DNA from: Takakia lepidozioides
Lineage: Eukaryota > Plantae > Bryophyta
Length of the DNA: 64,000 nt
Assembly (NCBI GenBank): GCA_030704615.1
Contig: CM060731.1
Location: 13,330,001-13,394,000, forward strand
Direction of reading: 5' to 3'
Each line of letters starts with the position of its first letter. Positions within the stretch are counted from its first letter, which is position 1. Below the pieces are notes generated by a model, which made no database searches, was not told the DNA's origin, and saw nothing but the letters and a program-made list of their open reading frames with translations. The translations under genes and the position numbers were made by a program. Shown here in pieces: positions 11,172 through 52,260 of this stretch.

Positions 11172-11384
11172 CAGGGCAGCCCATCTGATATTTTCACAGA
11201 AACAACAGAAGATGGCTCCTCGGGTTCGAAGGGGGAGGGAGGCGACACTACTTGGCCGATCTGCTTGGATCGCAGGGCAGCCCATCTGACATTTTCGCAG
11301 AAGCAACAGAAGATGGCTCCTCGGGTTCGAAGGGGGAGGGAGGCGACACTGGACTGGAAGACTTGGCCCGATCTGCTTGGACAT
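11172..11384. repeat. Tandem duplication, two copies of a ~101-bp unit just downstream of the small minus-strand gene
   Basis: CAGGGCAGCCCATCTGA(T/C)ATTTTC...GGGGAGGGAGGCGACACT starts at 11172 and again at 11273. Confidence 0.85.
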
Positions 11385-11423
11385 CGCACCTTTCAATTTT
11401 AAAAGGGACCCCGCAACGCATAG

Positions 11424-11642
11424 TTATAGGGTCGACAACCTCATTCCCCCAGTTGGAAAGTAATTGACCACAATGGGCACCCTTGACTTCACCCTTGGAG
11501 GCTGCTCTTTGCTGTTTCTGGCCCTGCTGGGAGGTATGCTCTCACTGTCGGAGGACGTCGGAGCTGGACTTGGGCTAGTGCGTGAAGATCCAAACAGCCT
11601 TGGCAAGCAGCCCAACTGCTTCGTCGAATGGGGATTCGCCAT
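11424..11642 (-). CDS. Small Ser-rich protein A (72 aa) with C-terminal PIVVNYFPTGGMRLSTL
   Basis: ATG at 11642, single exon. C-terminal motif shared with the ORF at 30247-30570. TATA-like TATAAGTA ~250 bp upstream. Confidence 0.6.
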   Translation of the reverse strand: MANPHSTKQLGCLPRLFGSSRTSPSPAPTSSDSESIPPSRARNSKEQPPRVKSRVPIVVNYFPTGGMRLSTL

Positions 11643-12648
11643 TGCTTCTTCGCCAGAGACTGCGTCAGTCTTCGACGTTGGAGATTCTATGCTGCTCACA
11701 ACACTTATCAACACGGCGACAGTAGTATTCGTAGAAGTTCGTGGAAGAGAGACCTGTGTATTCTGTGTGCGATCTACCTAGCAAGTCGGAGTGATGAGAA
11801 CATCAAATGCGAGGGAGAAATCTCACAATGGCTAATCCGGAAGCAGATATATTCCAGAGTGTGTGACTTTGATGAGAGAGTTGGCTCTCAAGCGCTACTT
11901 ATAGGGCGAGGTTTGAGACAAGGCTTGTCGATGAAGCTTCCTTCAGATGCTAGGCCCCACCAGACTGGAAGAAGAAAAAGACTTCCTCAACAAGACTCGT
12001 CAAGACTTCCTCGTACCAGTTTTGGGCATTCACTATTTCCAAACCTAACTAATTTTCCAGCTCTTTGACGGTGAGGTAAAAAGAAAGAATGTTTCCGCTT
12101 GTAGACTTTTTCAGTAGCCCCTAAAAACGCTGCCCTAACTTCTGGCCACTGGAAATTACCAGACGCAATACAGCAAGTTTATTTTGGCCTCTCAGTGCCT
12201 GGAAGGAGCAGCTCAAATGACATTGACCATTCGTTTCATGATCTTTCATGGTCTATGTGTAAAGGCCACTTATGGGTATGTGGGGGTCGATGTGGGCTCG
12301 AACCTGCCTCCAACCCACCATAATGGATTATTCCCCAACGCTACTGGGGCCTCTCATCAGGTAGAAATTTCATGTTCAAACGTTCAAACATCCTCCTCCT
12401 CAAATCCGAGAGAGTCAGCAAACAAAATCCATGCTAATTATGTAAGTATTTGTGTGGGCGACACACTTGGTCAGTGAGCTCAGGCTCACTGGCCCCTGGG
12501 AGTTCCGCAAATTTGAGTACCTATGCTGGATTTTCAAACGCTTTTGACCATGGGCTCACACTCAGAGGTCAGGCGTGCAGCTAGTACCAGGCAATGAATG
12601 CTGGGATATTCTAGGTCATAATGTCAGATGCCAGCCTCTAATAAAGGA

Positions 12649-13645
12649 GGAAGATAATAGGAATAATGTAAGAACTTAATGCAAGCGCGTCAGGACGGTC
12701 CAACCCTGACACCCGTACAGCAGCCGGCTGGGCTCGGTCAATCCCTCCCCACCCCCGCCCTCATCCCATCGGCGTCGTCGCCCCCTGCGTCGTCATTCTG
12801 CGACACCAGTCCGCCGCTTCCAGCAGTCCGCCAGTTCCCTGTAACCCCGCCTCGGGTTCAACCATCACCCCCATGTAACCCTCTGTAACTCCGCCGAGTG
12901 TAACCCACATTACCATGTAACCCTTTGTAACCCATATAACCCCATGACCCTCTGTAACCCATGTAACCCTCTATAAACACCGCAGAGTGTCACCCCCACC
13001 CCTATGTAACCCTCACTACATGTAACCCTCTGTAACCCGTACCCTGTTATGTAACCCTCACTACCCCTCTGTAACAAACCCATGTAACCCTATGTAACCC
13101 TCTGTAACACCGCAGAGTGTCGCCCTCACCCCTTATGTAACCCTCACTCCATGTAACCCTCTGTAACCCATGTAACCCTCTGTGACCCTTTGTAACCCTC
13201 ACCACCATGTAACCCTCTGTAACACCGCAGAGTGTCACCCTCACCCCTATGTAACCCTCATTCCATGTAACCCTCTTTGACCCTCAACCCTCACCACCAT
13301 GTAACCCTCACTCCATGTAACCCTCTGTGACAATCCCTCACCAGGTGTAACCCTTACCCATGTAACCCTCTGTAACACCAGTGTCACCCTCGCCACCATG
13401 TAACCCTCGTAACCCTCACAAACCCTCTGTGGCTGTAACCTATGTAACCCTCTGTAACACCGTAGAGTGTCGTCCTCACCCCTTATGTAACCCTCTGTAA
13501 CCCATGTAACCCTCTGTGACCCTTTGTAACCCTCACCACCATGTAACCCTCTGTAACACCGCAGAGTGTCACCCTCACCCCTATGTAACCCTCACTCCAT
13601 GTAACCCTCTCTGACCCTCTGTAATCACCACCATGTAACCCTCAG
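12649..13645 (+). repeat. Left TIR plus subterminal (TGTAACCC)-core satellite array
   Basis: Dozens of TGTAACCC/TGTCACCC units with recurring blocks such as TGTAACACCGCAGAGTGTCACCCTCACC; inverse of the right arm. Confidence 0.92.
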
Positions 13646-13851
13646 TATCACCGCCTCGTGTACATCATACACGTGTAAACTATCCGACGGCCGAATGGAG
13701 GTTTAAATAGAGGCCGAAACCCTAATTTGCTCTCTCCATCCGTTTCCAGATTCTTAGCTCGCTCGTTTTTTTGCTTTGGGGCATCAGCTTTCTGCAATTC
13801 CCATGGTGCCCAATCGGCTTCACACATCAATGCGAAAGATTTGTAGTTCAT

Positions 13852-14180
13852 TCAGTTCAGTATCGTCATCCCAGCAACATACAAGACAACGCTTTCCGCG
13901 CAACGATCCGTCAAATTATTACTACGGTTTTCTCTACGATTGATACGGTTGTCTCTATTCTTTTTCTTTCTCAATGTCATTCTTGTTGTTTTGTCACCGT
14001 CCCCGATGGCTATGGTATTCCTAAGATCCGCATTAGGAAAGGGTTTTGTTTCTTTCGGTCTAGCCATGCAAGCAGCCGCTCATTTGACGGGGTGCCCATT
14101 CACTCTCCTCTCGTGTATCTTTTGTTCACACACCAGCCGGGGCAGCCTACTCATCGCTTATGGATGCAATACGTATCGAA
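13852..14180 (-). pseudogene. Degenerate inverted copy of the zinc-finger exon of the element's Ulp1 gene
   Basis: Minus-strand AACMARPKETKPFPNADLRNTIAI matches plus-strand AACMARPKGTKPFPDAELKHAMAV near 15210. Confidence 0.6.
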
Positions 14181-14958
14181 TCATGCGTGTTTTGCAAGCA
14201 CTGTCAACCGGTTACATGTCTGATGGTTTATATGACTACCTCACGTGTGGTATGGTTACACACAGGGGGTTACACGGTGTTTTCTTTCTCAACATGCTAG
14301 CTTGGTAGACGGTTTAGTAATGGAGGTTTAGATGGGTTGACATGTTTGATGGGTTACGTGGATGTTGCGCTCGCGGAGCCACATAGGCTAGGGTTACATG
14401 GGTGGGGCATTACATTGACCATGTTTACCTGGAGGTTGCATACTAATGGTTTGATATGACAGGGTTACATCGATGTTGTGTTCGGGAGTCACATAGACTA
14501 GGGGTACATGAGGTTGTGACGAAGGGTTACATCATATCTGGGTACCTGACGGAGGGTTACACTCGACGTGCCTGGCATTCGAGTAACGGCCGGTTTGTCG
14601 CGCTCACAAGTGTAGGGTTACGGGTTACACTCCGCTATTCCGGGTGACACCGGGATTGCAACTCATACACGTGTGAGTCAGTGCGGATATAATTGATTGC
14701 AAGCCGCCAGATTTTAATGAACCGCCGTCTTTCGCTTAACCGACGTGCCTTACGGGTGACATCTAGCTAGCTTCGTTCTTCGTTCTTTGATCATTGTTCA
14801 GTTTTCCCCTTCTCGCAGCCATTCATATTCTTCCTGCACTCCTTGCTGTGCGTGCTCCCTGTTGTGCGTTCTTCGGAATTCTCTTGGTCTTGGTCTTTTC
14901 TTGTCTTGTCTTTTCTTGCTTGCTCTTCTCTTCTCTTCTGTCAGCTTTTTCTTTTGTC

Positions 14959-17900
14959 ATGGCTGATTGTTATTTGTTCCCTGGAGAGGCTACTATTCCA
15001 TTTGATCACTTGAAAAGGGATGGCGAACGAGTTCGCTTTTGGTACACTGAGCATGAGCATGCTACAATGATCGCGTACTGCCACACCAGGTGTAGAGAGG
15101 CCAAGGTGGAGGGAGCAAAGGGCCGGCCTAAGTTCAAATGTCCTTATTGTGGGGCAGTAAAGGTAGATAAGAGCAGATTGAATCGGCATATTGTCGATGG
15201 AACGGCCGCATGTATGGCCAGACCGAAAGGAACAAAACCGTTTCCTGATGCGGAGCTCAAGCATGCCATGGCTGTTGAAAATGTGATGAATTCTGTTCCA
15301 GCTTCTTCTGTTGATGCATATCATGCATGGATTCTGCAAAATAGGGTGGCTTTGGGTGAGATTGCAGATCCTATTGAAGTGCCTGCTGTTGTACCTTCTT
15401 CGGCTATTTCTGCTACAGAGGTTCCATCTTCTAGTGCTCCTGCTGTTTCTGTCCCTGGTCCTTCTATTCGGCAGGTTTCTAACGAGAGAGACAAGCGGCG
15501 ATTGAGCCCGCCTACCTGTCCCTATTGCAAAGAAAATCAACATTGGAAACCGGGGAAACCGGAGCTCAAGGTTCATCTTGCGAAAGAGAACTCCAGGCTC
15601 AATCCTTCTGCTACCGCATGGCCTTATTCCTCAGTTCCCATTTCCGAATGTCAATGAGAAGGGGTTTTGCCGGCATTCCAAGAATTTGTTGCGCGAGGCG
15701 AGGGCGCAGTCCATGCGACAGCTGCAAAATCAAGTTGGGTTCTATCGACAGACAATCAAGTTGGATTCCCTGCCATTTCTCTGTTTTTCAAATTTTGGGC
15801 TGTTGTCTATCCATGTAACCCTTTGTGTTACCCCCCCTGTCTCTCCTGTGGCGTGTAACCCACCCACAGAGGACCCCTTTAAAAACCCCTATGGTGTGTA
15901 ACCCACCTCTGTGTAACCCCGTGTAGCCCATCTTGTTTGTAACCCATTTTCATGTGTAACCCCTCGTGCTGTAACCTTTTTCTCTGGTGTAACCCCTCAC
16001 GCTGTATTGCGCAGGGAGTCGATATCATCTTAGAAGCGATGATATGGACAGTGTTGTTGCTGCCCACAAGGCATTTACTGCCCAGCCGGATCATGGTCCG
16101 TTAATGATAGAGGAATTGAATCGGGTGAAGGAGTATTTAGAGAGCATTGGGCATCCTGACATGCCAAAGCAGAAAAAGAAAAAAGGTGGGAGACTTACAC
16201 GAGTCCATCGAGAGAGCCAAGCCTCACATGATGATGACACGATGGACGAACTAGCTGTTGGCAATACCGACCTTGACGATGCCAGAACTTCAAATCCTCT
16301 TGTCATCACTATTACTGTAGATGGAATCAAAGGTTTGGTTGTTCCACATCCGTTGGAATTCACTCGTGGTTTTGCCGAAGGATTGATCAGTCAAATGGAG
16401 AATCTCACCGGGGAGGGGGGGGAGGAGGCAGTCATGTCAGTTTCCCAAACGCATCCCAGGTTGGGGTTCACGACTGAACTTCTGGAAAGTGCTCTTACGG
16501 CCTCAAAGGTGAAGGACCTGGTCGATGAGTATTACGGCTTTAGTCTGATGTACTTTGCACAACCTGGTGACGGAATTGCGACCTTGGATTCTGAGCTCGA
16601 AGACTTAAGATCGAGTTTGAGTACAGAAGAGTGGGGTGACCGGTCAATTAAGATCAACGGAGCTATACAGTTTTGCAAGGCAAGCCGTCGTCGCGCCGCC
16701 CATCACTTTGCGATCCAACAGAGAGAATCGTTTATCCAGCTTTGGTGTTGTGGCCTCTTCAGCGAATCACCAAGAAATGGACTTCAATGCGCGTTTGGGC
16801 ATCCAGTATATGAGAGACCTTGGGTCTGTAGTGCCTTGGTATCTCTGTAAGTGTTTACTCCATCCACTGTCACCCCTCTCGTCGTGTAACCCCTTTGTGT
16901 GTAATCTTGTAATCATTGTAACCCTCGCTATGTGGAACCTTGTAACTCAGTGTAACCCTCGTTGTGTGTAACCCTGTAATCAGTGTAACCCTCGCTATGT
17001 GGAACCTTGTACTCAGTGTAACCCTCGCTGTGTGTAATGTAACCCTCGGAGTATGTAACCCTGTAATCAGTGTACCCCTAATGGTACCCCTCGCTGTGTT
17101 ACCCTAGATTTGTTACCCTCTCGTTGTGTAATCTCAGTAGTGTAACCCATGGTAGTGTAACCCATTGCAAACTACTGTCTCTAACAGGGTGGTGTAACCC
17201 ATATCGTGTAATCCGAACCACTGTCTTGTCCTAGTCAGTGTAACCCTTACATAGTGTAACCCTTGCACTTTCAAAAACCTCGTTCCACGACTAAAACCTT
17301 TGTCTTTTCCCCGATGCAGATGAGTCCGAGCTCATGACCAATCAAGTCGCCAATGCGTTCAAAAACCTTTTTGAGGCTCAACGTGAGCTTCACGAAGTTG
17401 TGTATGGGGCCCCTCCACAATGCGATACAGGGGGCGGGGGCGCGCAGACGAGCGATGGGCCAATTTCCGCCCCGCAGAGCGACGATGTACATGACGAGGA
17501 CATCATTCCAAGTCAATCTGCCGTTGTATCTTTGTCGCAGGTTGGTGAATTGTACTCAACCCAGCTGCACTTAGGGGTGAACCTAGCAGACTTGACGCGG
17601 GATTTGCCCATGATTTCTGATACTGATACTGAAGATGATACATCAAGGTGGAACACCCAAGTGCGAACCTCTTTGTCCGCAGCCCCAGTCATTTCTTTTG
17701 AAGGTCTTAATCGAAGAATCGGGGACCCGCTTGACCCAGAGTCTGTGTATGACTTTGAATCTGGAGATGCTGGGTTGAACCCTCGATGCAGCAATGTAAG
17801 TATTTGTCAGGATCATGTGGTCAACCTCTCTCAGAATGACCCAGCCTTCGTGGGTCCCATTGATGCGCAGGGTGACTCTGCAAGGGGAGGATGCCCTGAA

Positions 17901-20303
17901 ACCGAGGGTTACACTGCACCTGAGGGTGACACTGTGCAGAGAGGAGCAGTGGGAGGTTACTGGGGTGACACTGTTCACTGGGGTGACACTGTTTACACTG
18001 CACGGGGTGTGGCTGACAATGTCGTGAGGGACATTGTCGTGGGTGACACACCATTGCCCGTGAACACTGCAACTTCCGTTGAGAGTGACATTGACATGGG
18101 TTACACTGATAGGGGTGACACCCCACAGCCAACCCACATGGTAGATGTCAGTGAGTGTAACACTGTCATGGATGACATTCCACTACCACTAGTCGTGGAA
18201 GGTGACACTCCTTTGCCACGGCCACTAGTCGCGACGGATGACGGTCTTCTGCTAGTCAACATGGTCTTGGAGGGTGCGGAGAAGGGCGACACAATCAAGG
18301 ATGGCATTGAGGAGGTTGATGCAAAGAAGAGTGACATCGACATGGGTGACACGGGGAAGGGTGTCACCGAGGAGGTTGTCAGTTGGAAAGGGTGACACAA
18401 AGCAGGGTCACACTGAGAAGCGTTTCACTGTGGAGAGTCACGAAGAGAAGGATGTTGCGGAGCATCTAGACACTGAGAAGAGTGACACTGCCAAGGTGAC
18501 ACACATAAGATTGTTACTCAGCAGAGTGACACTGGGAAGGAACCCGATGAGAAGGGTGACACTGCGAAGAGTGACACTGATAATGCGGCCAAAGAGAAGG
18601 GTGACACTGAGAAGGTAGCCGGAGAGAAGGGCGACACTGAGATGCGTGACTCTGAGGAGGTAGCTGAAGAGAAGGGTGACACTAAGAAGAGTGACACTGA
18701 GGAGGTAGCCGAAAGAAAGGGTGACATTGAGTGACACTGAGAATCGTGACACTGAGGAGGTAGCCGAAGAGAAGGGTGACACTAAGAAGCGTGACAAGGG
18801 GTTTGAACAGAAGGGTTACACTGACAGGGGTAGCACCGAGGAGGTGAGCTGTGACACTTCTGCCCTTGGTCAATCACCTCCCAGCACGTCTCAGACGAGG
18901 GAGTGCAGTCTTCAGCACTTGCAGCAAACTCAGAACAAGCACCTCTGGCTCAGAAATTCCCCCTACGGCGGCATTGTCAGGGTTGCAGAGAATCCCAGGA
19001 GGTCAAAACGGCCGCCTGCTCAAAGAAAGCGGTTGGCTGAACCCCCTAGCGCTGACAAAGAAGTATCTGTTCTTGTCGCACCCAAAAAACAGCGAACCAA
19101 ACCGAAAGGCAAAAGTGCAGGGGTCTCGGAGGTTGACGTTGTCCAGCAGCAAGAGGTCCTTGCCAAGCACTTGCGGGAGCGTTCGAGGTACCTCATTGTA
19201 CTTTGATCCTCTCTGATTTTGAATATTGATTATAACTCTTGTATGATGCATCGTAATGTTCGTAATGTGCGGTTTGTTGCAGACTAAAACAACGGTACTT
19301 GACAAAGTTCAGAATGGTGTCGGACCCTCCTGGGGCGCCCGAAGTGAAGTTTTATTATGGCGATGCCTTCCTGCTTCTAGTCCGTTACAGTTTTACTTGG
19401 AAGAGACAGATTTTGAGCCGATGTATAAAATAAGAGCAACTGTCACAGATGCATTGCTCTCGGGTTACAACAACTTCTGGAGGCCAAATTGTTTAAGGCT
19501 ATCGCACCTGAGTTTGTCATCTGTGCTCCTTTTCAATGGCATGTCATGCGTACCAATGGTAACGATCTGCAGACGCTATTCGGGTTGGTGCAAGAATGGT
19601 ACACTCAGGATGCCCGAGGGATGGTGTTCACAAAGAATCGAGATCTTGTGGACGTGGTTGTCATCCCTATTGTCTTCGAGTAAGTAATTTCAGCATTGAC
19701 TGAGCATGTTGGGTTACACTCCTCTATTCTAGACTGAGTTGCACTAGTGACTGCTGACTAGTTGTGTAACACCGTTTAGAGTTACAGTACAAGGGTTACA
19801 CTACTGGGTTACTTACACCACAATGGGTTTCATTGGAGATGTTTTTTTCTATTCTGACGTAACGGCTTTGTTTGTGTTGCAGTGATCACTGGAGTGTTGC
19901 TGTTTTAGAGCGCCGAGGTCGGATAGTACATTTGGACTCCCATAAAACCATTGCCCGACCCAAACTCATTGAAGGAATTTTGCGAAATTTTGCCATAGCG
20001 TTCTTTGATTTCATGCCTGGATCTGATGACTTCAGTTACGTCATGGAGAGGATGGAATGGTTTGAGGCCAGTGTCCCCCAACAACGGAGCTGTTGGGAGT
20101 GCGGCTATTATGCACTTTGTTTTGTGCAATTTTACTTGGAGTGGAAGTTCAATGTGAAAACCACAGAAGATCGAACCCGTCATAGGCGGGCGTTTACTGC
20201 AAGTTGGTTCAACGAGTCAACCATGATAGCTTCCCGTACTCATATGATTAGTTGGCTGTGTGACGAGATGGACAAAGACTTGGTCAGATGGCCAAAGAAA
20301 TAA
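14959..20303 (+). CDS. MULE accessory gene: two CPYC-type zinc fingers, acidic GDT-repeat region and C-terminal Ulp1/C48 SUMO-protease domain (multi-exon, several frameshifts)
   Basis: ATG at 14959. Fingers CPYCGAVKVDKSRLNRH...C and CPYCKENQHW...H. Putative introns near 15770-16014, 16847-17319, 19189-19282 and 19680-19882. Ulp1 catalytic motifs VVIPIVF/DHWSVAVL, HLDS, VPQQRSCWECGYYALCF. The single-gene model is inferred from splice signals. Confidence 0.7.
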
Positions 20304-21706
20304 ATAGCGTCTCTTGATGCATTTTTGCTTCTATGTGGTTTGTTCGTAACACTTCACAGTTTGGGTTTCATGCAATGGGCTTACATGGGGTTACACCTTA
20401 TAAGGTTACATGAAGTGGAATCATAGACAAGTACTTGGGTACACCTTTGGGCCCTGGGGCAATGGGCTTACACTCTGTGGGTTCACACATAAGTGATGGG
20501 TTACACCATGCCGGGTCTCACAACGTGGGGTTACACTTATGGGTTACATACCTGGCTATGTCAGGGTCACGTTGCTGAAACAGTATACTTTCGTGGCATG
20601 TAACCCCACCTCGACTATGCGCATTTGTTTTTTTTTTTTTTTTTCGCACTGAAGTGTTTGTGCACTGAAGTTCTCAGATTTATACTACATGGGGTTACAT
20701 ACATGAGGGCTATGTACAATGGGTTACATACGATGGGGTCACAATAGTGTGGGGGTAACATCTGGTCGGGCTACATACTTCTTGGAGTTACAACACTCTG
20801 GGTTACACTCACTCAAGAGGGTTACACAGTTCTAAGTTACACTGTGCACAATGAAAGTGGGCAGGGTTGCCTATACAAGGCTACGTGTCGTGGGGATACA
20901 TAAGATGGGTGATGTAGCATCGGGTTTATAGCGTGCACCCCAAATTGTACAATGGGTTACATGCGATGGGGTGACATCAATGGGGGTTACATGTGGTCGG
21001 GATACATACTTCTTGGGGTTACACAACAACAAGTTACACTCCGGAGGGCTACACTGGTCCATAACATAGGTTGAACGGAATGATTATCTATCTCATGGAT
21101 TACACGTCCATGGGTTACACACAAATTGGGTTACACTAGAGGGGTTACACATACAGGGGCTAGTGTTGGTGACTAAAGGTGCTCGACTTCAACATCTTCC
21201 CACTCTGTATTGAAGGGTCATGTAACCCCGGCAGACTAACCCAGACCCTGTCACATTGTAGTCACATTGTTCTCAGAGTTACACCACTGACAGCAATATT
21301 CTATGGGGTTACATACTGGGTTACACTGTTGATAGTTACATTGCAGTTACACTTGGAGTTACACCACAATGAGTTACACTGAAGAGGTTCACACTCATCT
21401 GTGTTACACTGTGTGGAGTACCACAGATGCGTTACACTAAGTAGAGCTATGTTACGTTATGAAACCCCAGACAGTGTAACCCTGCGGTGTGTCACCCCGG
21501 CCCATGGGTGTCCCATTGAGTGGGTTACATAGGTTGAATGTGGATGGAATGGCAAAGTGAATAACAACCCATGAACAGACATGTACTTCATATTAAACTT
21601 GGTGATCACAAAGTAAGTGTCATTGCCAATGGACTCAATGGTCACTTACTACGGAACCGGTCTACAAAATCTACTTTCCTGGCAAGGGACATGTTGTTTT
21701 CCATCA

Positions 21707-24700
21707 TCATTTTTTGAATGGAACTGCTTGAAGAGGGTGCAACAGACCTTTGTCGATTCTAACTTGTAAAGTGGACAGCCTCCCACGAACACAACGAAGC
21801 TCGGCAAGCAAATGTTTGCGCATTGTTTCACTCTCATTGCCAAGAAGCGACAGGGACTTCATCTCAGATTCAATTGATGAAACATCCGATGGCTCCTGCC
21901 GACCACGCTGGGATGATGCTGAGCACTCCGTAGGCTCTGCTAGATTCACAACTTCCTCCTCTGCATCAATATCTGGAAGTTCCGATTTCATCAACATGTG
22001 AAGACCTCCATGAATGGTCCCGAGCTTTGTGCCACAGAGCTTCACAATAAGCCCTTCCTTCAGATTTGGCTTCATCAATTGAAGAACGCGGATTTGATGT
22101 TTGCACAAGTTACCCTTCAAAGCCCATGGACAATCGCAACAAGCCCAGGTGGTCGCAGGTGCATAGATTGTGTAGCTTCGACCGGCCGTTTGAACACTAT
22201 CCACAATCGCCGGATGACCAGGAACAGTGGGCAAATGAACATTGACATCAGGGATCTCCCTTGCAGTCCAAACAACATTACTGATAAATTCCTCCTGTCG
22301 TACATTCCTTTTGAAGCCTTTCGATTTCAAGTTATCTCTATACCAATAGTGGGTTAGAACAGGACCCACGAGTTCGCTGATCAGCCAATCGATTCTCCTG
22401 CCATCAAGCCTTTGCTTTCCCGAGCGTAAACGAGCCTTCAAATTTCCGTGCCAAGATTCAATTGCGGCATTAGTATCCTGACTTGCGTGGGGAATATAAC
22501 GAGCCCCCGTGATCCACATGCTCAGTTTTGGGACCCATTCCATTCTGATGTAACGTAGGAAGTCACGCGCAAGCGGATAGGAATAATTCAAATCTTCCAG
22601 TCGCTCCAGCGCCCACTCTTCTGGGGTGACTCCCACACAGGCGTTAATGCCGTACATTACGTCGCCAAGCTGTTTCAAAACAGCATTGCGAGTGTATGGA
22701 TCGGGCATCTTACGCCACGAATGTTTCAGCCAAGCGCGGCGAACATGCCAAAGGCATAGAAATATTGCTACGTCCCCAAACGATTCCCTGCACGCACACA
22801 CATCAAATGCCACCCAATCCATCAGTGTAACTCTTGTCAGTGTAACTCTTATCAGAGGAACTCTTCGCAGTGTAACTCAGAAGTAAAAAGTGTCACTCTT
22901 AGTAGTGTGACTCATGTAACCCCTCGTGCATCTGGTCATGTAACTATCAGACAGCAGTGTAACCCAACACATATAACCCCTCGCAGCGCTGTAACGCAAT
23001 CCATGTTACACCGTGTAACTCTCAGAGCGACCCAACCCATACAACCCTCTGCGATGCTCCCAGTGTAACTCACATGCTATAGCAGTGCAACCTAATCCAT
23101 GTAGGACTGCGGATGACACGCCGTGTAACTCCCAGTGTAACTCGCAGTGTAACCCTCTGTCTACCTCATAGCAGTGGTAAACCCTCGGTCTAACTCACAG
23201 CAGTGTAACCCTCCGTCCAACTCAAGGCAGTATAACCATCTGTCTAACTGATAGTGTAACCCTCAGTGTAATAGACAGCACTGCAACCCAATCCATGTAA
23301 CCCCTCGAGCAACTGACAGTGTAACTCCAGTGTTACAGGCAGCAATGCACCCCCTCGTGTAACTGGCAGTTTAACTCTTACTGTGATTCTCAGTGTAACT
23401 AGCAGCAGTGTAGCCCGATCCATGAAACCCCTCGTGCATGCAACTTGTAGTGTGACTCAGAACATTGTAACTTCTAGCCGTGTACCTGATAGCATTGATT
23501 TCTGCGTCTGCATCGTCGACAACAAAAGCATTTGGCCTCCAATCTGGTTTGCTCTGAAGAAGTCGGTCGCGAAGACGTTTCATCCAGGGGCTCAAGTCAG
23601 TCGTTTTGTTTCTCGCTGATATAATATAAGCAACAGGTATGCCGTTGAGCCATTCGTCGAACACCATCATGGTATACATTGGGAACTGCAATGTCGCAAT
23701 GGTACAAAAATGAATAAGGTGAGCGTTAAAATATTGGCAACAGTTGCATGGCACTCACATTTCAGAATGCAATGAAAGGTAAAGCGTGACACGAATACCT
23801 TATTTTCGTTGGTCCCAAATGTTGCATCGCAGGATACCACACGGTTGTGTCCCAAGTCGATCATTTTCTGTTTTTGCCACTCCGTTTGTATTCCAATTAC
23901 GAACTTCAAATCACCCGCCACTGGCGCTGTCTCTTCATGGTAGAAGAAGACGCTTTCAGGATTGCTATTGACCCACATACGTACACTTTGTGCATCATCT
24001 GGATGTTTTTTTTGTAACTCTCAATCGCAAGCTTGTCGGCAATGTTTCTCACGTCGTACTCGAACAAGAAACAATCGCGACTCCACTCCATGCCTGGCTG
24101 AGACGCACAAGCTTCCTGGAGTTGTTGAGTGTGTTGTGTCATAATCATAGCTGGAGATAGGCCACTGCGAAGACTATCGACGATCCACTGTTTCATATCT
24201 TGGCTGAGACGAGGGGCATGCACGAATCGCGAGAAATGGGAAGAGGGGTCAGCTGAACCATGACATGGCTTTCCTTTTGCATCCACATGCTGTTTCTGGA
24301 AGTATGTGATGATTGCCAACTCTGAATCTAGAAAACACTGGCCAACTTTGAAGCTACACGTACACCCACGTTTGTATGACTCTCCGAAATCCGCTGCCTT
24401 ACGTCTGATTCGCTTGACTGCTGTTTGATTATCGGAGGCTGCTATCGGTTTTTCTTTTTTCTTCACAATCGGCGGGTCCGTGCGCCTATCTATCGGGCCG
24501 TAGCAGCAGTGGTACCTGCAAAAAAAGCATATAAAGCGAGGAGGGTTATCGCCATATACGACTTTGCTAGACTAGCAGAAAGAAGTGGGGCTGGGAATGT
24601 TATACAACCCTCATAAGTGACTTACTTATGCCACTGACGATAACTGTTTGCACGCGGTGTTGTCAAATCTGGCAACTCACGGTACCTTCGATCTTGAACA

Positions 24701-24997
24701 TAAAATTGGGTCTTCCCATCCACTCTACTCCTTTCTCCCTCCAGAAAGTCAGGAATGCGAGACCATGGAACGACAGCTACTTCGATGGATATCCGTTTCC
24801 CTTTTCCCTGGGAAACCTGGCGTATCCAACGGAGGTTTGTGTGATTGAAAAGCCCGTCTATGGGCAGCTGTAGGATGCATTTCAAATGAGATACCAAATG
24901 CTGCAAATGACAGAGTTCTCCCCTCATCTTTCAAACCATTTGATTCCAATGCTGCTTTGCGTTCCTCGTCTAGCACCTTCGCGGCAGCACATGCCAT
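21707..24997 (-). CDS. MULE DDE transposase with SWIM zinc finger (multi-exon; frameshifts near 24.9 kb and at the T-run near 24010)
   Basis: VPWSRIPDFLEGE, KRGCTCSF...HVDAKGKPCHG, FVIGIQTEWQ, CDATFGTN (D1), FVVDDA (D2), LCLWHVRRAW (CxxH), DTNAAIESWH (E), SWIM CDCPWALKGNLCKH. Confidence 0.88.
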
Positions 24998-25279
24998 TAG
25001 CAGCAACAATACCACCAGTACAGTACAAATCGCATAACACACGCGGCAACGCAGCGGAGCCCTCGGGACTGCACGTCGTCTACGCACCTGGTGAAAATGA
25101 CGAGCGATGATGGAGTTACACGTGGGTTTTGATGTCACCGAATCGTGTAACCCAGGTTTGAATTCAAAATATCTGACACCTCTTGGAGCCCGCCAATTTT
25201 TGCCGGGCACTAAGGGGCTACACGAACAGGGGTGACATGCGTTGGGGATAAAGGATCCGGGGTGACACGAGCTATGAGT

Positions 25280-27606
25280 GACACAATCGGGGGTTACACG
25301 GGGGGGATTGATACAGTATCGGGGTTACATGGTGGGGTTACAATGTGAGAGTTGCACAATGAGGGTTACACGAGGCGGAGCTAAAGCGCTGACGTGCAGA
25401 GGGTTACAGGGATGATGGGGTTACGAGGAACTGGAGTTACACGGAGAGGGGTATATGGGATAACATGATACAAGCTTACATTGGGGTTACACGATGCAGG
25501 ATAACATGGAGTGAGGGTTACACCTCGCGGAGTAACAGAGGGTTACATGGGTTACAAAGGGTTACAGGGTCATGGGGTTACATGGGTTACAGAGGGTGAC
25601 ATAGGGTTACATGGGAGGGTTACATGGAGTGAGGGTTACACTCAGCGGTGTTACAGAGGGATAAACGGGTTACGGAGGGTTACATGGTGGTGAGGGTTAC
25701 ACCTGGTGAGGGTTACAGAGAGTCACAGAGGGTCACATAGGGTTACATGGAGTGAGGTTACACAGGGGTGAGGGTGACACTCTACGGTGTTACAGAGGGT
25801 TACTGAGGGTTACATGGTGGTGAAGGTTACACCTGGTGAGGGTTATAGAGGGTCACAGAGGGTTACATGGAGTGAGGGTTACATGGGGTTACATGGGTTA
25901 CACACAGGGTCACAGAGGGTTACACGGGTTACGCAGGGTCACAGAGGATTACATGGGTTACAAGGAGTGAGGGATGCATAGGGATGGGGGTGACACTCTG
26001 CGGTGTTACAGAGGGTTACATGGTGGTAAGGGTACACCTAGTGAGGGATATAGAGGGTCACAGAGGGTTACATGGGTTACAGAGAGTTACAGAGGGTCAG
26101 AGAGGTTACATGGAGTGAGGATTACATAGGGGTGAGGGTGACACTGCGGTGTTACAGAGGGTTACATGGTGGTGAGGGTTACAAAGGGTCACAGAGGGTT
26201 ACATGGTTACAGAGGGTTACATGGAGTGAGGGTTACATAAGGGGTGAGGGTGACGCTCTACGGTGTTACAGAGGATTACATGGGTTACAGAGCCACGGAG
26301 GGTACGTGAGGGTTACATGGGGATGAGGGTGACACTCTGCGGTGTCACAAGGGTTTGTGTGGGTTACGGAGGGTTACAGGTGGCGAGGGTGACACTCTGC
26401 GTGTTACAGAGGGTTACATGGTGGTAAGGGTTACACCTGGTGAGGGATATAGAGAGAGGGTTACATGGAATGAGGGTTACATAGGGGAGGGTGACACTCT
26501 GCGGTGTTATAGAGGGTTACATGGTGGTGAGGGTTACAAAGGGTCACAGGGTGGGTTACAGAGGGTTACATGGAGTGAACAGGGGTGAGGGCGGTGTCAC
26601 AAGGGTTTGTGAGGGGAGGGTTACATGGTGGCGAGGGTGACACTCTGCGGTGTTACAGAGGGTTACATGGTGGTAAGGGTTACAATATAGAGGGTCACAG
26701 GGTTACATGGTGGTGAGGGTTAGAGGGTCAGAGAGGGTTACATGGTGAGGGTTACATAGGGGTGAGGTGACACTCTGCGGTGTTACAGAGGGTTACATGG
26801 TGGTGAGGGTTACAAAGACAGAGGTTACATGGGGTTACCGGAGAGGTTACATGGTTTTTGTGAGGGTTACATGGAGTGAGGGTTACATGGTGGCGAGGGT
26901 GACACTCTGCGGTGTTACAGAGGTTTACATGGAGGTAAGGGTTACACCTGGTGAGGATATAGAGGAGGCACAGAGGGTCAGAGAGGGTTACATGGAATGA
27001 GGGTTACATACGGGTGAGGGTGACACTCTGCGGTGTTACAGAGGGTTACATGGGGTGAGGGTTACAAAGGGTCACAGAGGGTTACATGGGTTACAGAGGG
27101 TGAGGGTTACATAAGGGTGAGGGCGACACTCTGCGGTGTTACAGAGGGTTACATAGGGTTACATGGGTTAAAGTGTTACAGAGGGTTACATGTAGTGAGG
27201 GTTACATAGGGGTGGGGTGACACTCTGCGGTGTTATAGAGGGTTACATGGGTTACAGAGGGTCATGGGTTATATGGGTTACAAAGGGTTACATGGTAATG
27301 TGGGTTACACTCGGCGGAGTTACAGAGGGTTACATGGGGGTGATGGTTGAACCCGGGGCGGGGGTTACAGGGAACTGGCGGACTGCTGGAAGCGGCGGAC
27401 TGGTGTCGCAGACGACGACGCAGGGGCGACGACGCGCCTGGGCGACGACGCCGATGGGATGAGGGCGAGGGTGGGGAGGGATTGACCGAGCCCAGCCAGC
27501 TGCCTTTCGATGTCTGCCGGAGGCGAAGAACCGGCGGTACGGGTGTCAGGGCTGGACCGTCCTGACGCGCTTGCATTAAGTTCTTACATTATTCCTATTA
27601 TCTTCC
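25280..27606 (-). repeat. Right subterminal (GGGTTACA)-core satellite array plus right TIR
   Basis: ~2.1 kb of GGGTTACA/GGGTGACAC units, reverse complement of the left array but about 2.5 times longer. Confidence 0.92.
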
Positions 27607-28200
27607 AATAAAGGACACGGCAGGGCCCGTTCGCTGTGAAATGGGGATCTCCCTTAAGCCTTTCCCCACAGCACTGCCGAATGGGTGGTCAGTGGCAGGA
27701 AGAAGCTCATGAATTGCGGGGGATTCTCGTGACTCTACAACGGCAGAAAATGCCACCAAAGGTTACCAAGCTAATAGATGCTCACATGTGATATTTGGCA
27801 ATGCATGAAATACCCATTTTGTTGTTCCCACTTGGGAATATGATACGGCACTTCTGAGTGTAATCTCACGTGTGTTGGCTTGGACGATACTCATGTACAC
27901 TGGGCCCGTGGGGTTAGCTTGGAGCGCAAGCTATGGACCCTGTCTGTTCCCTCTCCATATCAGCTGGCAAGTATTGCTCTCGGTATCGATGTCTTGTGGA
28001 TGTGTATCTAGAACGGAGAGCAGGTGCACCACAATCATTCCTAGCTCCTGGAACTCTGCCGTGGAGAGCCCAGGCTGAAGTTTTCCCTATTCAGAAATTC
28101 TTTTTGCAAGTTTAGACAGCTGCACATTAAAATCCTTTGTTCTTCTTCAAGCCTGGAGGTCCTCTCACAGGAAGTGATATCTCCATACGGATCAGTATTA

Positions 28201-47416: not shown

Positions 47417-50400
47417 GAGAGAGAGAAGACTTTGGCAGAGGCCGGAGTAACTAAGAGCCACTTCGCCTTATGGCTACTGCCCCCTCTCGGGGGTGGGCCC
47501 TCTCTAAAAGGTGTCCAGAGGACACTAAGTGTCTTAGAGGAGCATGGTACCTAGGGTACCCTAGGTACCCCGGTAGCCAGAGAGGGGTTAGCTTCGAGTT
47601 TACGTTTGTTAGTAATAATGGCTGTGAGGGAGCGAAGAGCTGTGAGGTGTATTGCTTTGAAACATTTATGAATGGAGATGATAAGGAGTTTGAAGTTAGT
47701 GTGAAGTGCATCGATACTAGCGTTATGAATGCCACCTCTAGTTCCTGCCGTGATGACCGTCAAAGTACCAGTGGTCCAGCCCTTATGCCTGAGTGCAAGG
47801 ATAAGTGGTGCATATTTTAGCGTTTTGTCTAGCTTTGAGTCAGCAGGGTATCGATCATGGCAATATATGAACTCAATAAAGTGGATGGTGAGGTTGGGGG
47901 TTGAGGCGGTGGGTGGGGGGGAGTTTATGGGTAAACCATCCACAAACAAGATGTCCGGGCAAAGTCTGGCGGGGCATGTGCAAAGGGAATGGGAGCAAGT
48001 GCAAGGGAGAAGCCAGTGTGGGACTGTATGGTCTGGGGGTTGTCCTTGGTAGGTACCAGCGTTTATTAGCGAGAACCATCTAGTTTCGGCACGATGTAGA
48101 AGGAGTTTGTGGATGTGCCAAATTGCTTGGTTGTGACAGGTTATTTGGAGCCCATGGATGATCGGGTGTTTACATTGGCTAAGAAGGTGTGGCCAGGTAT
48201 CACGTTTCATCTATGTATGCATCAAAGGCATATAAGCATGTCTGGGCTACCCTCCATTGGTCGAACATCTCTACCTACGAAAACTCTTGAATAGGTTGGT
48301 GGATGGAGATAGCCAGGTTGGCGATGGCTGCAATGAGATTACGATCAGAATGGTGATGGTGAGAAGATGGGCGAGAATGGTGGTTGCGGATGAGAAAGAG
48401 CGAGGTGAGGTTGTCTGTGAAGATATAATGTGGAGGGGAGAATGAGGACAGTTGGGTAAGCGCTTCAAATATTGCCATCAGTTCTGCGCGAAGTATTGTA
48501 GCAGGACTAGGGAGTCTGTGTGCGATGCCCTGATTGGTAGCGGCATGCTATACTCCATAACCGGCGTGGGAGCCGGTGAGGGAGCCGTCGGTGGGAGTGG
48601 GATGGAGGAAATTTGGGAGGTATAATTTGGCGGTAGGATGGGAGGGGTGGGAGGGGTGTATATTGGGCAAGGGATGGGCGCGGGAACGCCCTTTTCCATG
48701 CCTTGCTTAAGTTAATGCTAGGGAGTGGATCAGGTGGATTTGTGAGGTCTGGGTGTGTGATATGGTGGGGCAAGATAGTGGTTTTTAGCTAGTGGGTGCG
48801 CTTGAGGAGATGGTCTAGTAAGGCAGGGAAAGTGGGAAGTACGTTGGAATACGTGTTTGTTGGGGAGGAGTGTGTGGCCATATGGGCCCATTGGAGGGCC
48901 TCATGTGTGAGGGGGCCTGAAGGAGGGTGAGCAAATCCCCTCCCTGTCCATACGTGGTGGGTGGCATGTCTGGTGGCCCCGAAGATGCAGTCTCGGGGAT
49001 GGGGGCTGGAGAAAGATGTGATTCCTAATGGGCATGTAAGTGGGCTCGAATAGTATGAGTGAGTGAGTTCGAAAGTGGTAATGAGCAGAGAGAGGATATC
49101 AGGGGGGAGAGTATTATGAGCCAAGGCTTAGGACAGTTTTGACAGGGAACGAGGTTTTTTTGGGAGGAGTGTCATAGAGGTAGCGGGTAACAAGCCAGCT
49201 AAGTTCGGTGGCGAAGTCTTGGCGGGGTGGGTGGATGTGAGTGTCACCGTGGGAGGGAGTAGAGTATTTAACCCAGAGCCATGCTAGTCTATCATTGGGA
49301 ATGAGGCCTGCAAGAAAACGGCCGTTGAAGGTGTAGATAGTGGACATACGAGGGCCTTGATAGATTGTGGGAGAGGTGTGCATGATATCTTTATCTGGGT
49401 TGCATTCAGTAATATCTATATATACATTGGGAGCTGTGAGTGGTTGATGTATGTGACGGACATCTTTGGGTTGGGTTGGGGAAGTATGTTGTTGGTGGGT
49501 ATGCGTGAGGTAGTTGGTGTTGGTACGTTTGTGGAATGCGGTGAGGAGTGTGAGATTATGGGTTGGGTTGCAGTCATCATGTGAGCCAAAGAGGTCGTCC
49601 TCGATTTGCCATGAGTTATCATCAGTTGTGTAGTCAGCCCATTGGCAGAGGTAATATGTATCAACACGTGTGGCCCCATATGAGTCTGTAGAAGTTTGGG
49701 TTTTAATACGGATGATGGCTCCGATAACATATGCGTCTGGGTTATCTGGGTGGTCATGATGAGTTGTAGGGGTGCCTGGTGAGGGGGGATCTAGGGTGAA
49801 AGTAGTTTGCGTAGGGGAGGGCGTGTGGACGCGGACGGGAGGGGACTGGGTGGAGACCTTATCCGGGTGGGGAGGGGGTATAGGGGAGGTGGATATGGAT
49901 GGGATCTCTAGCGTCGTGTGTGTCTGAGGTTTGGGAGGCCCTAAGCATGTGGAGAATAGAGGGGGATGGGCTTGATCTATAGGCAGGCAGTAAATCGCGT
50001 TGGGTATGGGGAAAGAGTGAGCAGGGGAGGTCGCATTCAAGGGTACATGATGCGGATGGATGGCAGAATAGGGTTTGTAGGTGTTGGAGGAACCGGCAGG
50101 TTTGGCGGTGGCACGAGAGTGTTTAAGTGTGAATTCCCCCGGGTTATAAGTTTAGTGCCAGTGGCGGTGGTAAGTTGGGTGAGATGAGTGATATGTCGTT
50201 CTTTAAAATAGGTAAGGAGGGGACGTTTTTGGCGGGGGTGAAGGCGTTCAAAAAGGGAGAGGGAAGGGCTGGTATTTAGAGCGTGTTCTAGTTGTGATAT
50301 CGTGTTAGGATAGCCTAGTAGGTCGGTTTGTATGCTGATACGCATTTGTCGTAGGATGAGTAGAGTACGGGCCGTGGGGAAGTGTAGGCAGGATTGGGAG

Positions 50401-52260
50401 TGAAGAGATGGGAGGGCTAAGAGTCCATTAAATTTGTGAGCTAGGAATTTCAGAAGACCGCGGTAGATAAGTCCCAGGCGCCCAGGATCATTGAGAGCTT
50501 CTTGTAATTGGGTACGGAGAGTTCGAGCATATGAAATAATCAGGGGGCTGGAGCCGACGCCGTAACAATCTGTCGGGAGTTGGGTGAGGGCACTAGGAGT
50601 ACTGGTAGGCAAACCACATATTCGCTTGGTGAGTTGAGTGATGTGTTTGTCTAGTATTTTGAGGTCTAGTAGGGAGAAGGGAGCAGCGTGAAAAGAATAT
50701 TGGACTTGTGGTTTAAGCACAGAGCTTATGATTGATAGTTTGGGTCTAATGGAGATAGGGGATTTAAGAAGAGCAAGGCTTTTGTTAGAGAGTTTAGCAA
50801 GTGTGGTGGACTTCTGCACATGCCAAGTAAGTGATGGAACTAGCTGGATGCCTAAGTATGTGTAAGGCTCATCAGGTCCCAGAAACGGAAATGAGTTGTT
50901 TAGGTAATGGATATAGAGTTTACAATGGGAAGCAATCTCGGATTTTGTTAATTTACTGTGATGGGTTGTTGCGGTAACGGCGCACTTATGGAGGCTAAGT
51001 TCCATGCCAGACCTCTCCCTAGATGGTACCGCGTAGGATAGGAATTGGGGGGGTAATACCATAGTATGAACCAGAGTATTTTCGTAGTGCTGTTGGTATA
51101 GATGTTGCCAAAGAGTTGGATTAGTGAGCTTGGCATCTTCAAGGGCTGAGAGGACGTATTGTATTTGGCGGGTTGTGCTACGTGTGGCTCGGAAGCCCTC
51201 CTGGGGGTCGCTCTCTGGAATATGATGTTGTTCTCCGTAACTGGAGAGCAGCAAGGTCAGTGTGCTGATAAACAGTTTATAGATAGTGTTGGCGAGGGCT
51301 ACGGGTCTGTAGTTGCCGAGGTCAGTAGGGTCGTCTTTCTTGAATAGCAGGATGGTGCGACTATGTTTCCAAGTGGGTGGGATACGTTTGAATTGGTAAC
51401 ACAGTTTGAAAAATTTGAAGAAGAGGGTATGAAGATGGGGGTCAAGCGCTTGCAATATAGTGTTAGGGATCATATCTGGTCCAGGGGCTTTTGATTTGGA
51501 CAGCCTTTTAAGGCATGAGTTATACAGATCTAGCGTGAATAGGTCCTTTATGCGGTCCGTGGGTATACCTCGTTTGTCTAATGAGAATCCATCTAGGTCA
51601 TACCATGGGTAATGCTTCACTTTACATAAACAGTTGGGGTGGTGGTGCTCAGGGTGGAGGCAGTTCGTGATAGCAGGCGTATAGGAAGCAAATGCTTGTA
51701 TCCATATTTCTTTGTTGATAGCAGTGGGGCTTGTTAAGAGATGGCCCAGCCGATGTTTAAGGCAGTCAATTGACGGATTAAGCGTGGGGTTAAAGATGGC
51801 TTTGTGTGCTCTTTTAGGATGGTCATGGAGGAGCTAGCCAAAGGAGGTAACAAACTTTTTGTGGTTATCGCTAGCTTTCTGTTTGGTTATAAGATATGCG
51901 GCTTTCTTTGCATCCCGGCCGAGCTTGGCGAGGGCAGCAACCCAATTCGGGATAGCACTGTGGTCCATAAGAGGGGGCAGGAGGGCTTGACATACGGGGA
52001 GGGAGTTTAGGCAGGTAATTGCGGGGGTCGCGTCTCCATCCTGTGGGATGATTGTTGGATGTGGAGTTAGGGATAATATAAAGGGCACGTCGTATGGTAT
52101 GATGGGTATTAAGGTGAGAGGTCTCCAGGCCCGTTTTTGTGTGCGGGTAAGGTAACCTCTGTTTTGTTTGGAACGGGCAGTCTGGGAGGTCCTGGGGGGC
52201 CACACATGTTGCCAACACACTTTTGAATATTTCTTGAATGATGGTTGTGAGGGTTCGCTC
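47417..52260 (-). mobile_element. 5'-truncated non-LTR retrotransposon (RLE-encoding, Dualen/RandI-like architecture)
   Basis: 12-bp TSD GCAATGTACCAA at 47405-47416 and 52261-52272. (CT)n 3' end. RT, RNase H and C-terminal CCHC plus PD-(D/E)xK endonuclease. Confidence 0.88.
47551..52260 (-). pseudogene. LINE polyprotein: RT (internally deleted), chromodomain, PCIF1-like MTase-like domain, RNase H, CCHC, RLE
   Basis: KAPGPDMIPN, NYRPVALANTIYKL, QEGFR, YTYLGI (RT); YVIGAII...YLCQWADY...NSWQIEDDL (chromo); YSSPLTC...RDCIFGA...WTGRGFAHPP; TDGS, ILRAELMAI, IFTDNL (RNase H); HLLSQC..CHNQA, PDIL...IEFIYCHD...KTLKYAPL (RLE). Confidence 0.8.

Follow-up and report, generated by a model that had tools for sequence, protein, structure and literature searches.

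A moss foldback MULE filled with one short word, and a candidate reader carried by the element

Introduction

Why should a transposon fill its own non-coding DNA with one short word, and who reads it? The question is raised by a stretch of 64,000 nucleotides from the moss Takakia lepidozioides (contig CM060731.1), called the window below, with positions counted from its first letter. Positions 12649-27606 of the window hold a Mutator-like element (MULE) of 14,958 bp. It is crowded with the 8-bp word TGTAACCC/GGGTTACA and bears two convergent genes: a transposase on the minus strand and, on the plus strand, a helper gene encoding a zinc finger, a helical domain and a C48 (Ulp1-type) protease.

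I propose, at odds of roughly four in ten, that the helper is what reads the word, and that it protects the element's activity from silencing. A wider claim is offered more tentatively. Moss MULEs may possess an ancient, clade-wide anti-silencing system, independent of the VANC proteins of dicots, in which a finger and helical protein co-evolves with the word and a ubiquitin-like protease is optional. The same solution would then have evolved twice in land plants.

One word in many compartments

The element is a foldback MULE. Its composite terminal inverted repeats (TIRs) begin with GGAAG, their segments are 97-99% complementary, tandem repeats lie just inside them, and a perfect target-site duplication (TSD) of 9 bp, within the 8-11 bp of MULEs, flanks the whole. 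The ends thus have the G/C-ended TIRs of the superfamily. The parts needed here are these:

12640-12648, no strand: left TSD, AATAAAGGA, identical to 27607-27615
12649-12836, plus: outer left TIR, free of the word (0 sites at up to 1 mismatch), 97% complementary to the right end
12837-13650, plus: left subterminal foldback arm, a tandem TGTAACCC array with 35 exact sites, 61 per kb, in tandem units
14200-14640, minus: block of words upstream of the helper gene, 6 exact and 11 near sites
20304-21706, no strand: spacer between the convergent genes, 20 exact sites
25281-27365, minus: right subterminal foldback arm, a GGGTTACA array with 73 exact sites, longer than the left arm
27366-27606, minus: outer right TIR, free of the word (from end complementarity and word count)
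27607-27615, no strand: right 9-bp TSD, equal to the left

The outer left TIR is likely the region where the transposase recognizes the end. The copy is young and recently inserted, and it is frameshifted in both genes.

The word occurs at 168 sites within the element and at 1 in the other 49 kb of the window, and its 7-mer GTAACCC at 178 sites inside and 4 outside. Even with the arms excluded, the top 7-mer reaches z=35.8; simulations gave at most about 4.7. The arms reach 61 sites per kb in the count by compartment. Allowing one mismatch, the upstream block, three introns, the spacer and a transposase intron (14200-14640, 15760-16014, 16847-17319, 19680-19882, 20304-21706 and 22788-23485) have 25-40 per kb, and DNA outside the element has 0.5-0.9. 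All the blocks that an earlier note on this DNA had named were found. There are no sites at all in the outer 188 bp (left) and 241 bp (right) of the TIRs or in helper exons 1, 2 and 5. The inverted subterminal arms account for 108 of the 168 exact sites; 59 are internal, and just 4 of those 59 lie in coding sequence (p=2e-16).

What kept these sites alike? Orientation is constant within each block and independent of the direction of transcription. The tandem unit changes in length from block to block, and the 10 nucleotides on either side of the core are nearly random between internal blocks (likeness 0.18-0.35; 0.41-0.45 in the arms). The conserved part is the 8-bp core itself. Since the core is kept while flanks and tandem units differ between blocks, I take it as a candidate protein-binding site, whose pattern is the one expected.

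It could be argued that no protein is involved, that a single satellite seed was copied around the element by slippage and tolerated only where nothing is encoded. Many of the blocks are indeed tandem arrays, and a variant of the word has invaded a low-complexity exon too: GTGACAC occurs 21 times in coding exon 3 of the helper (17900-18830), where it encodes G/S-D-T repeats. Neutral copying does not explain why blocks of different unit length and with random flanks should share an identical core, nor why many lineages show the same thing with different words, frequently with isolated sites scattered over short introns. I consider it improbable.

It may be added that GTGACACTG is the main word of a distant relative, L065, and that GTGACAC is the variant that invaded exon 3 of the window copy.

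A helper gene with one finger

The helper gene is laid out as follows, all on the plus strand except the first line:

14005-14121, minus: inverted, decayed paralogue of the finger exon (amino acids 68-106), containing a stop; 75% nucleotide and 54% amino acid identity to exon 1
14959-15759: exon 1, frameshifted in the window copy at 15512 and 15669 (reading frames and contig L004)
15139-15213: single C2HC zinc finger, C-x2-C-x12-H-x7-C, classical C2H2-like (Pfam zf-Di19/C2H2, invariant residues, profile)
15517-15528: apparent second CPYC, an artefact of a 2-bp deletion relative to L004 and X1
15760-16014: intron 1, 7 exact sites (phase 0 with the L004 indels; 226-nt join in contig X2)
16015-16846: exon 2, middle helical domain, a remote member of an unannotated all-helical family of about 300 amino acids
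16847-17319: intron 2, 13 exact sites, 33-bp tandem unit, phase off by one in the window copy
17320-19187: exon 3, acidic low-complexity linker with the GTGACAC-encoded G/S-D-T repeats and several frame breaks
19283-19679: exon 4, N-terminal part of the C48 domain, frameshifted (intron phases fit on both sides)
19680-19882: intron 4, with GGGTTACA sites (word count and phase)
19883-20303: exon 5, Peptidase_C48 catalytic core with H, D, Q and C (Pfam E 1e-4; invariant in four families)

The inverted copy at 14005-14121 has a basic tail after it. It may be what is left of another small gene for a finger, or it may pair with exon 1 in a hairpin.

The frame of exon 1 can be restored from other Takakia DNA. 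Two contigs from run SRR15431198, a T. lepidozioides sample (PMC9021317), are 98.4% identical to the element, which makes this moss almost certainly the host. Compared with L004, an independent Takakia contig of 98.4% identity, the window lacks CT at 15512 and one G at each of 15669 and 16018; the contigs of that run show the same losses, and run X1 has the first two insertions as well. With the missing bases restored, the frame of exon 1 stays open as far as 15759, and the second CPYC is no longer in it. A second zinc finger, which the earlier note had counted, is therefore a product of bases lost from the window copy; relatives likewise have just one. Exons 3 and 4 and the transposase have additional frame breaks, and the window and the Takakia contigs also differ by indels at the C-terminus of the transposase. 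Decay or assembly error may be responsible, either one.

Is it one gene? Very probably finger, helical domain and protease belong together. Intron 1, as modelled, predicts 479+2-255 = 226 bases between 15636 and 16116. Contig X2 of a diverged relative, whose run is RNA only by a guess, has exactly 226. Introns 3 and 4 have matching phases; that of intron 2 is off by one in the window copy. In the relative L065, the middle domain and the C48 domain share one stop-free open reading frame (ORF) of 942 amino acids behind the finger exon. The single polypeptide that had been suspected gains indirect support from these two observations. The window copy itself was found in no run recorded as RNA.

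Across eight sequences of 18-24% identity the finger never varies in its C, C, K and H, and classical C2H2 fingers are the best match to its profile (E 1e-4). The finger residues and the H, D, Q and C of the protease remain invariant at 18-27% identity, the latter in four families. The intact H, D and C had been correctly read. "De-SUMOylase" was an overstatement: by profile comparison the protease is nearer to the deneddylase SENP8 than to SUMO proteases (SENP8/DEN1 3e-7, a Ulp1-like enzyme 9e-7, Chlamydia Dub1 1e-4, SENP1/2 2e-3), and several relatives keep the word with no protease at all.

Exon 2 matches the middle-domain family with E 0.0027 by hhalign and, as a single sequence, matches the family's hidden Markov model (HMM) with E 6e-6; it is the sole segment of the 64 kb to do so. 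At least 157 proteins belong to the family, which Pfam does not annotate. Its predicted fold is confidently all-helical (pLDDT 87.5), with a 63-residue coiled-coil-like helix, and sequence and fold searches of the PDB, the latter with a model not restricted to the globular part, returned only coiled coils. No chromatin-related domain was among the structure-search matches. No exon or relative matched DUF1985 or DUF287 in Pfam, and no VANC-like sequence or fold was matched in the PDB, in a copy that may not have included VANC21 (9LNK). The fold search with the finger used a model too poor for a meaningful result.

Relatives, each with its own word

Searches for homologues of the spliced helper model, made exon by exon, found for the finger exon only the Takakia copy and generic C2H2 proteins, and for the protease exon no homologues; feature searches of the ESM Atlas gave nothing. 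Relatives were reached through the transposase. About 60 loci at 33-50% identity, apparently bryophyte DNA, came from ENA, JGI and Logan assemblies. A limited literature search found no publication on such moss elements.

By homology, the helper gene with its C2HC finger, helical domain and C48 domain belongs to a moss MULE family. Members with the same layout have transposases of 33-45% identity. The convergent finger-middle-C48 gene is also found in L008, L067 and L065 and, decayed, in L031 and L043. Finger and middle domain occur without protease in L002, L005-7, L014, L061 and L063, and the protease is lost from an entire subclade that retains the word along with finger and middle domain.

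In fifteen related loci a word of their own rises above a Markov null. The null was not exceeded by L003, a complete element with only a transposase, by decayed L031 and L043, or by six control regions. The words are:

ATGTTAC: L002, L005/6, L063, L044
ACGTTAC: L014
A[GT]GTTAC: L061
GTC[AC]TTC: L008, L067
GTGACAC: L065
ATGGTTA: L021
ATGTTTC: the L033 clade
TTCACT: L041

In 6 of the 8 relatives tested the word is significantly non-coding. It lies mainly in introns and spacers in the window, L002, L014, L061, L067, L008 and L001, and relatives often show dispersed single sites in short introns. In L002, L006 and L014 it is mainly internal and sparse in and near the TIRs. Huge arms are peculiar to the Takakia family. 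The VANDAL-like logic seen by the earlier note, in which each family multiplies a word of its own in non-coding DNA, is found throughout the clade.

Several features of the relatives stand apart from this pattern. In the ATGTTTC clade (L033:2178-5421; L050:1118-4896; L041:956-1243) a middle-domain/C48 gene lies upstream of the transposase and co-directional with it; the arrangement of genes therefore changed within the clade. At L002:4029-4508, L065:4893-5351 and L001:11478-11972 the transposase is followed, on its own strand, by a small additional ORF; those of L001 and L065 are weakly homologous (E 3e-4). L001, sister of L065, has other unannotated same-strand accessory ORFs at 11361-14230, one of them BAH-like by eye with no Pfam match, and two words, CGTGACA and CAGTGTTCC. 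L005:2651-7130 holds a second set of similar-sized minus-strand ORFs upstream of the element, possibly a neighbouring related element. In the window a telobox-like AAACCCTAAT lies at 13719-13728, immediately inside the left arm, and similar words are enriched about ten-fold in L002, L061, L065 and L067.

The words bear on the idea that the reader is a host factor, perhaps a telomere or telobox Myb protein, through which the element recruits host activators. The word invites it: AGGGTTA, with 112 occurrences, resembles telomeric repeats. The internal sites, however, fix GGGTTACA and not telomeric flanks, and the words of relatives are unrelated or shifted (GTCCTTC, GTGACAC, ATGTTTC, TTCACT), something a fixed host reader would not allow. 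I think a host reader quite unlikely. Telomere mimicry and a role as splicing signal were likewise weighed and rejected: the relatives have differing words, and both orientations relative to transcripts are found.

Who reads the word?

I propose that selection maintains the 8-bp word as a binding site, that local tandem duplication has spread it through all the non-coding compartments, and that the element's own helper reads it. The single classical-type finger would provide the base contacts. The long helix of the middle domain may oligomerize the protein, so that only dense clusters of the word, i.e. the element itself, would be bound well. Bound helper would keep the element transcribable despite host silencing, and the C48 protease, a dispensable add-on, might strip a ubiquitin-like tag (SUMO or NEDD8/RUB) from chromatin proteins nearby. 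Internal sites, a conserved core, outer TIRs free of the word and its absence from transposase-only L003 all favour the helper as reader.

If reader and word co-evolve, they should be seen to travel together. The window and the L005 clade share both GTTACA and a finger helix with K-x-R-L. The transposase tree, from an alignment anchored on the window's exons that covers only four deep lineages, rejects this grouping (p-AU 0.023); the helper tree prefers it, not significantly. L003, without helper or word, fits co-variation too.

Several considerations weigh against the helper. The conflict between trees is weak, since the shared GTTAC core may be ancestral. L001 has a word related to that of L065, and a transposase 70% identical, and no finger gene in 21 kb; several decayed elements have a word and no visible helper. 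One classical zinc finger normally reads 3-4 bp, so specificity for 8 bp needs extra elements. The structure model of the finger is of low confidence (pLDDT 46), with weak matches to UBZ-type fingers as well. Two thirds of the sites in the Takakia family lie in subterminal foldback arms, the type that promotes transposase binding in Muta1. Both the binding and the chromatin effect are argued from the pattern of sequence and from analogy.

The main rival, and a serious candidate though I judge it somewhat unlikely, is that the transposase reads the word. That protein is encoded, all on the minus strand, by:

21707-22787: last exon, with CxxH motif, catalytic E and SWIM finger; C-terminal frameshift relative to L068
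22788-23485: intron 3, with the word and GAGTTACA variants
23486-23685: exon 3, MULE domain, second catalytic D
23799-24515: exon 2, first catalytic D, frameshift near 24000
24686-25000: probable exon 1, frameshifted, start approximate, boundaries inferred from GT/AG

Pfam finds MULE (weakly) and SWIM in it, homologues carry PF10551, and the CxxH motif, MULE domain and SWIM finger of a DDE transposase are all present in this frameshifted copy. On this rival account the arms are Muta1-type repeats that boost loading, internal copies extend binding and hypomethylation, and the finger-protease gene is a separate cofactor. It accommodates the 108 of 168 exact sites in inverted subterminal arms, as subterminal repeats strengthen binding and excision in Muta1 (PMC5499845). 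It has a precedent in the AtMu1 transposase, which alone binds a motif and hypomethylates. It would also explain L001, and the words broadly follow transposase clades. It does not explain why the words of L002, L006 and L014 are mainly internal and sparse near the TIRs, or why transposase-only L003 has none, and the transposase tree joins the window with L008 and L067, whose word GTC[AC]TTCA is the least similar.

Then there is the possibility that the helper does bind the word, for transposition rather than against silencing, by bridging ends, by aiding insertion, as suggested for MURB, or by removing tags from complexes of transposase and DNA. The Takakia family's sites are densest beside the ends, the protease is closest to a deneddylase, and structure searches gave no chromatin-related domain. 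Against this, relatives have most of their sites in introns and spacers well away from the ends, and a whole subclade lost the protease yet keeps finger, middle domain and word. A purely transpositional role is, I think, unlikely. The reading I prefer is still that of a helper that opposes silencing.

Comparison with known systems

Words read by VANC form dense clusters in introns and spacers of VANDAL elements (PMC5735166, PMC10398659), and VANC is MAIN-like and dicot-specific (PMC13547354). The moss element resembles them as a MULE with an accessory gene and a family-specific short word, whose dense clusters in introns and spacers, each of one orientation, arose through tandem duplication. 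The accessory protein has tandem peptide repeats in its variable region, and words differ between related families. Unlike VANC, the helper has no match to DUF1985/DUF287 or PMD and no fold match, but a C2HC finger and a new helical domain instead; the TIRs are long, intact and foldback where those of VANDALs are degenerate, and there are two genes and not three. Because its helper has no VANC domain, the element is not a VANDAL. The independence from VANC that had been suggested fits, in that no relationship is detectable.

A fusion of an anti-silencing factor with Ulp1 has been described already, in KIU, one of the Kaonashi-type MULEs with ULP domains (Hoen 2006; Sasaki 2022, according to the reviews PMC13317346 and PMC6117577). 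The two systems share a C48 domain borne by a MULE, with intact triad, that ends the accessory protein, varies in presence among relatives and is fused to a presumed sequence-specific factor. KIU elements are non-TIR angiosperm MULEs with a VANC-type N-terminus; the moss MULE has TIRs, and the N-terminus of its accessory protein is unrelated. Since the VANC-Ulp1 fusion is known, the concept of a reader with a C48 protease is no novelty; the unrelated candidate reader module and the clade-wide set of words are.

The foldback MULEs Muta1, Tm1 (PMC3169594), FARE and FB-NOF share the 9-bp TSD, the unique outer part of the TIR and the asymmetric subterminal tandem arrays. They differ from the moss element, where the word also fills introns and spacer and a second gene is carried. 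Binding of the AtMu1 transposase is highest at TIRs, and termini are where TnpA acts (bioRxiv 10.64898/2026.08.24.746577). By analogy with self-activation by AtMu1, MURA and Spm TnpA, an element-encoded protein, here a candidate, would bind a repeated short motif and might hypomethylate locally; binding by those proteins is confined to terminal and subterminal regions, whereas 59 exact sites are internal here.

Neighbouring DNA

Elsewhere in the window, retroelement ORFs with weak RVT_1 and chromodomain matches lie at 49114-51620 (minus). The AT-rich segment 40001-45000 (GC about 0.37), with CHG depletion and tandem repeats of 108 and 42 bp, is probably another transposon.

Implications

That accessory proteins can counter silencing in a sequence-specific way is established for VANCs, which are confined to dicots. 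A structurally unrelated reader in mosses that follows the same logic in DNA would, if true, be a case of convergent evolution. The middle domain stands for at least 157 proteins that lack a Pfam entry, and the searches for structural matches brought up nothing beyond coiled coils. Families with the protease and families without it, each with its own word, form a natural panel, one that makes both the role of MULE-borne C48 proteases and the co-evolution of reader and motif testable in a transformable moss.

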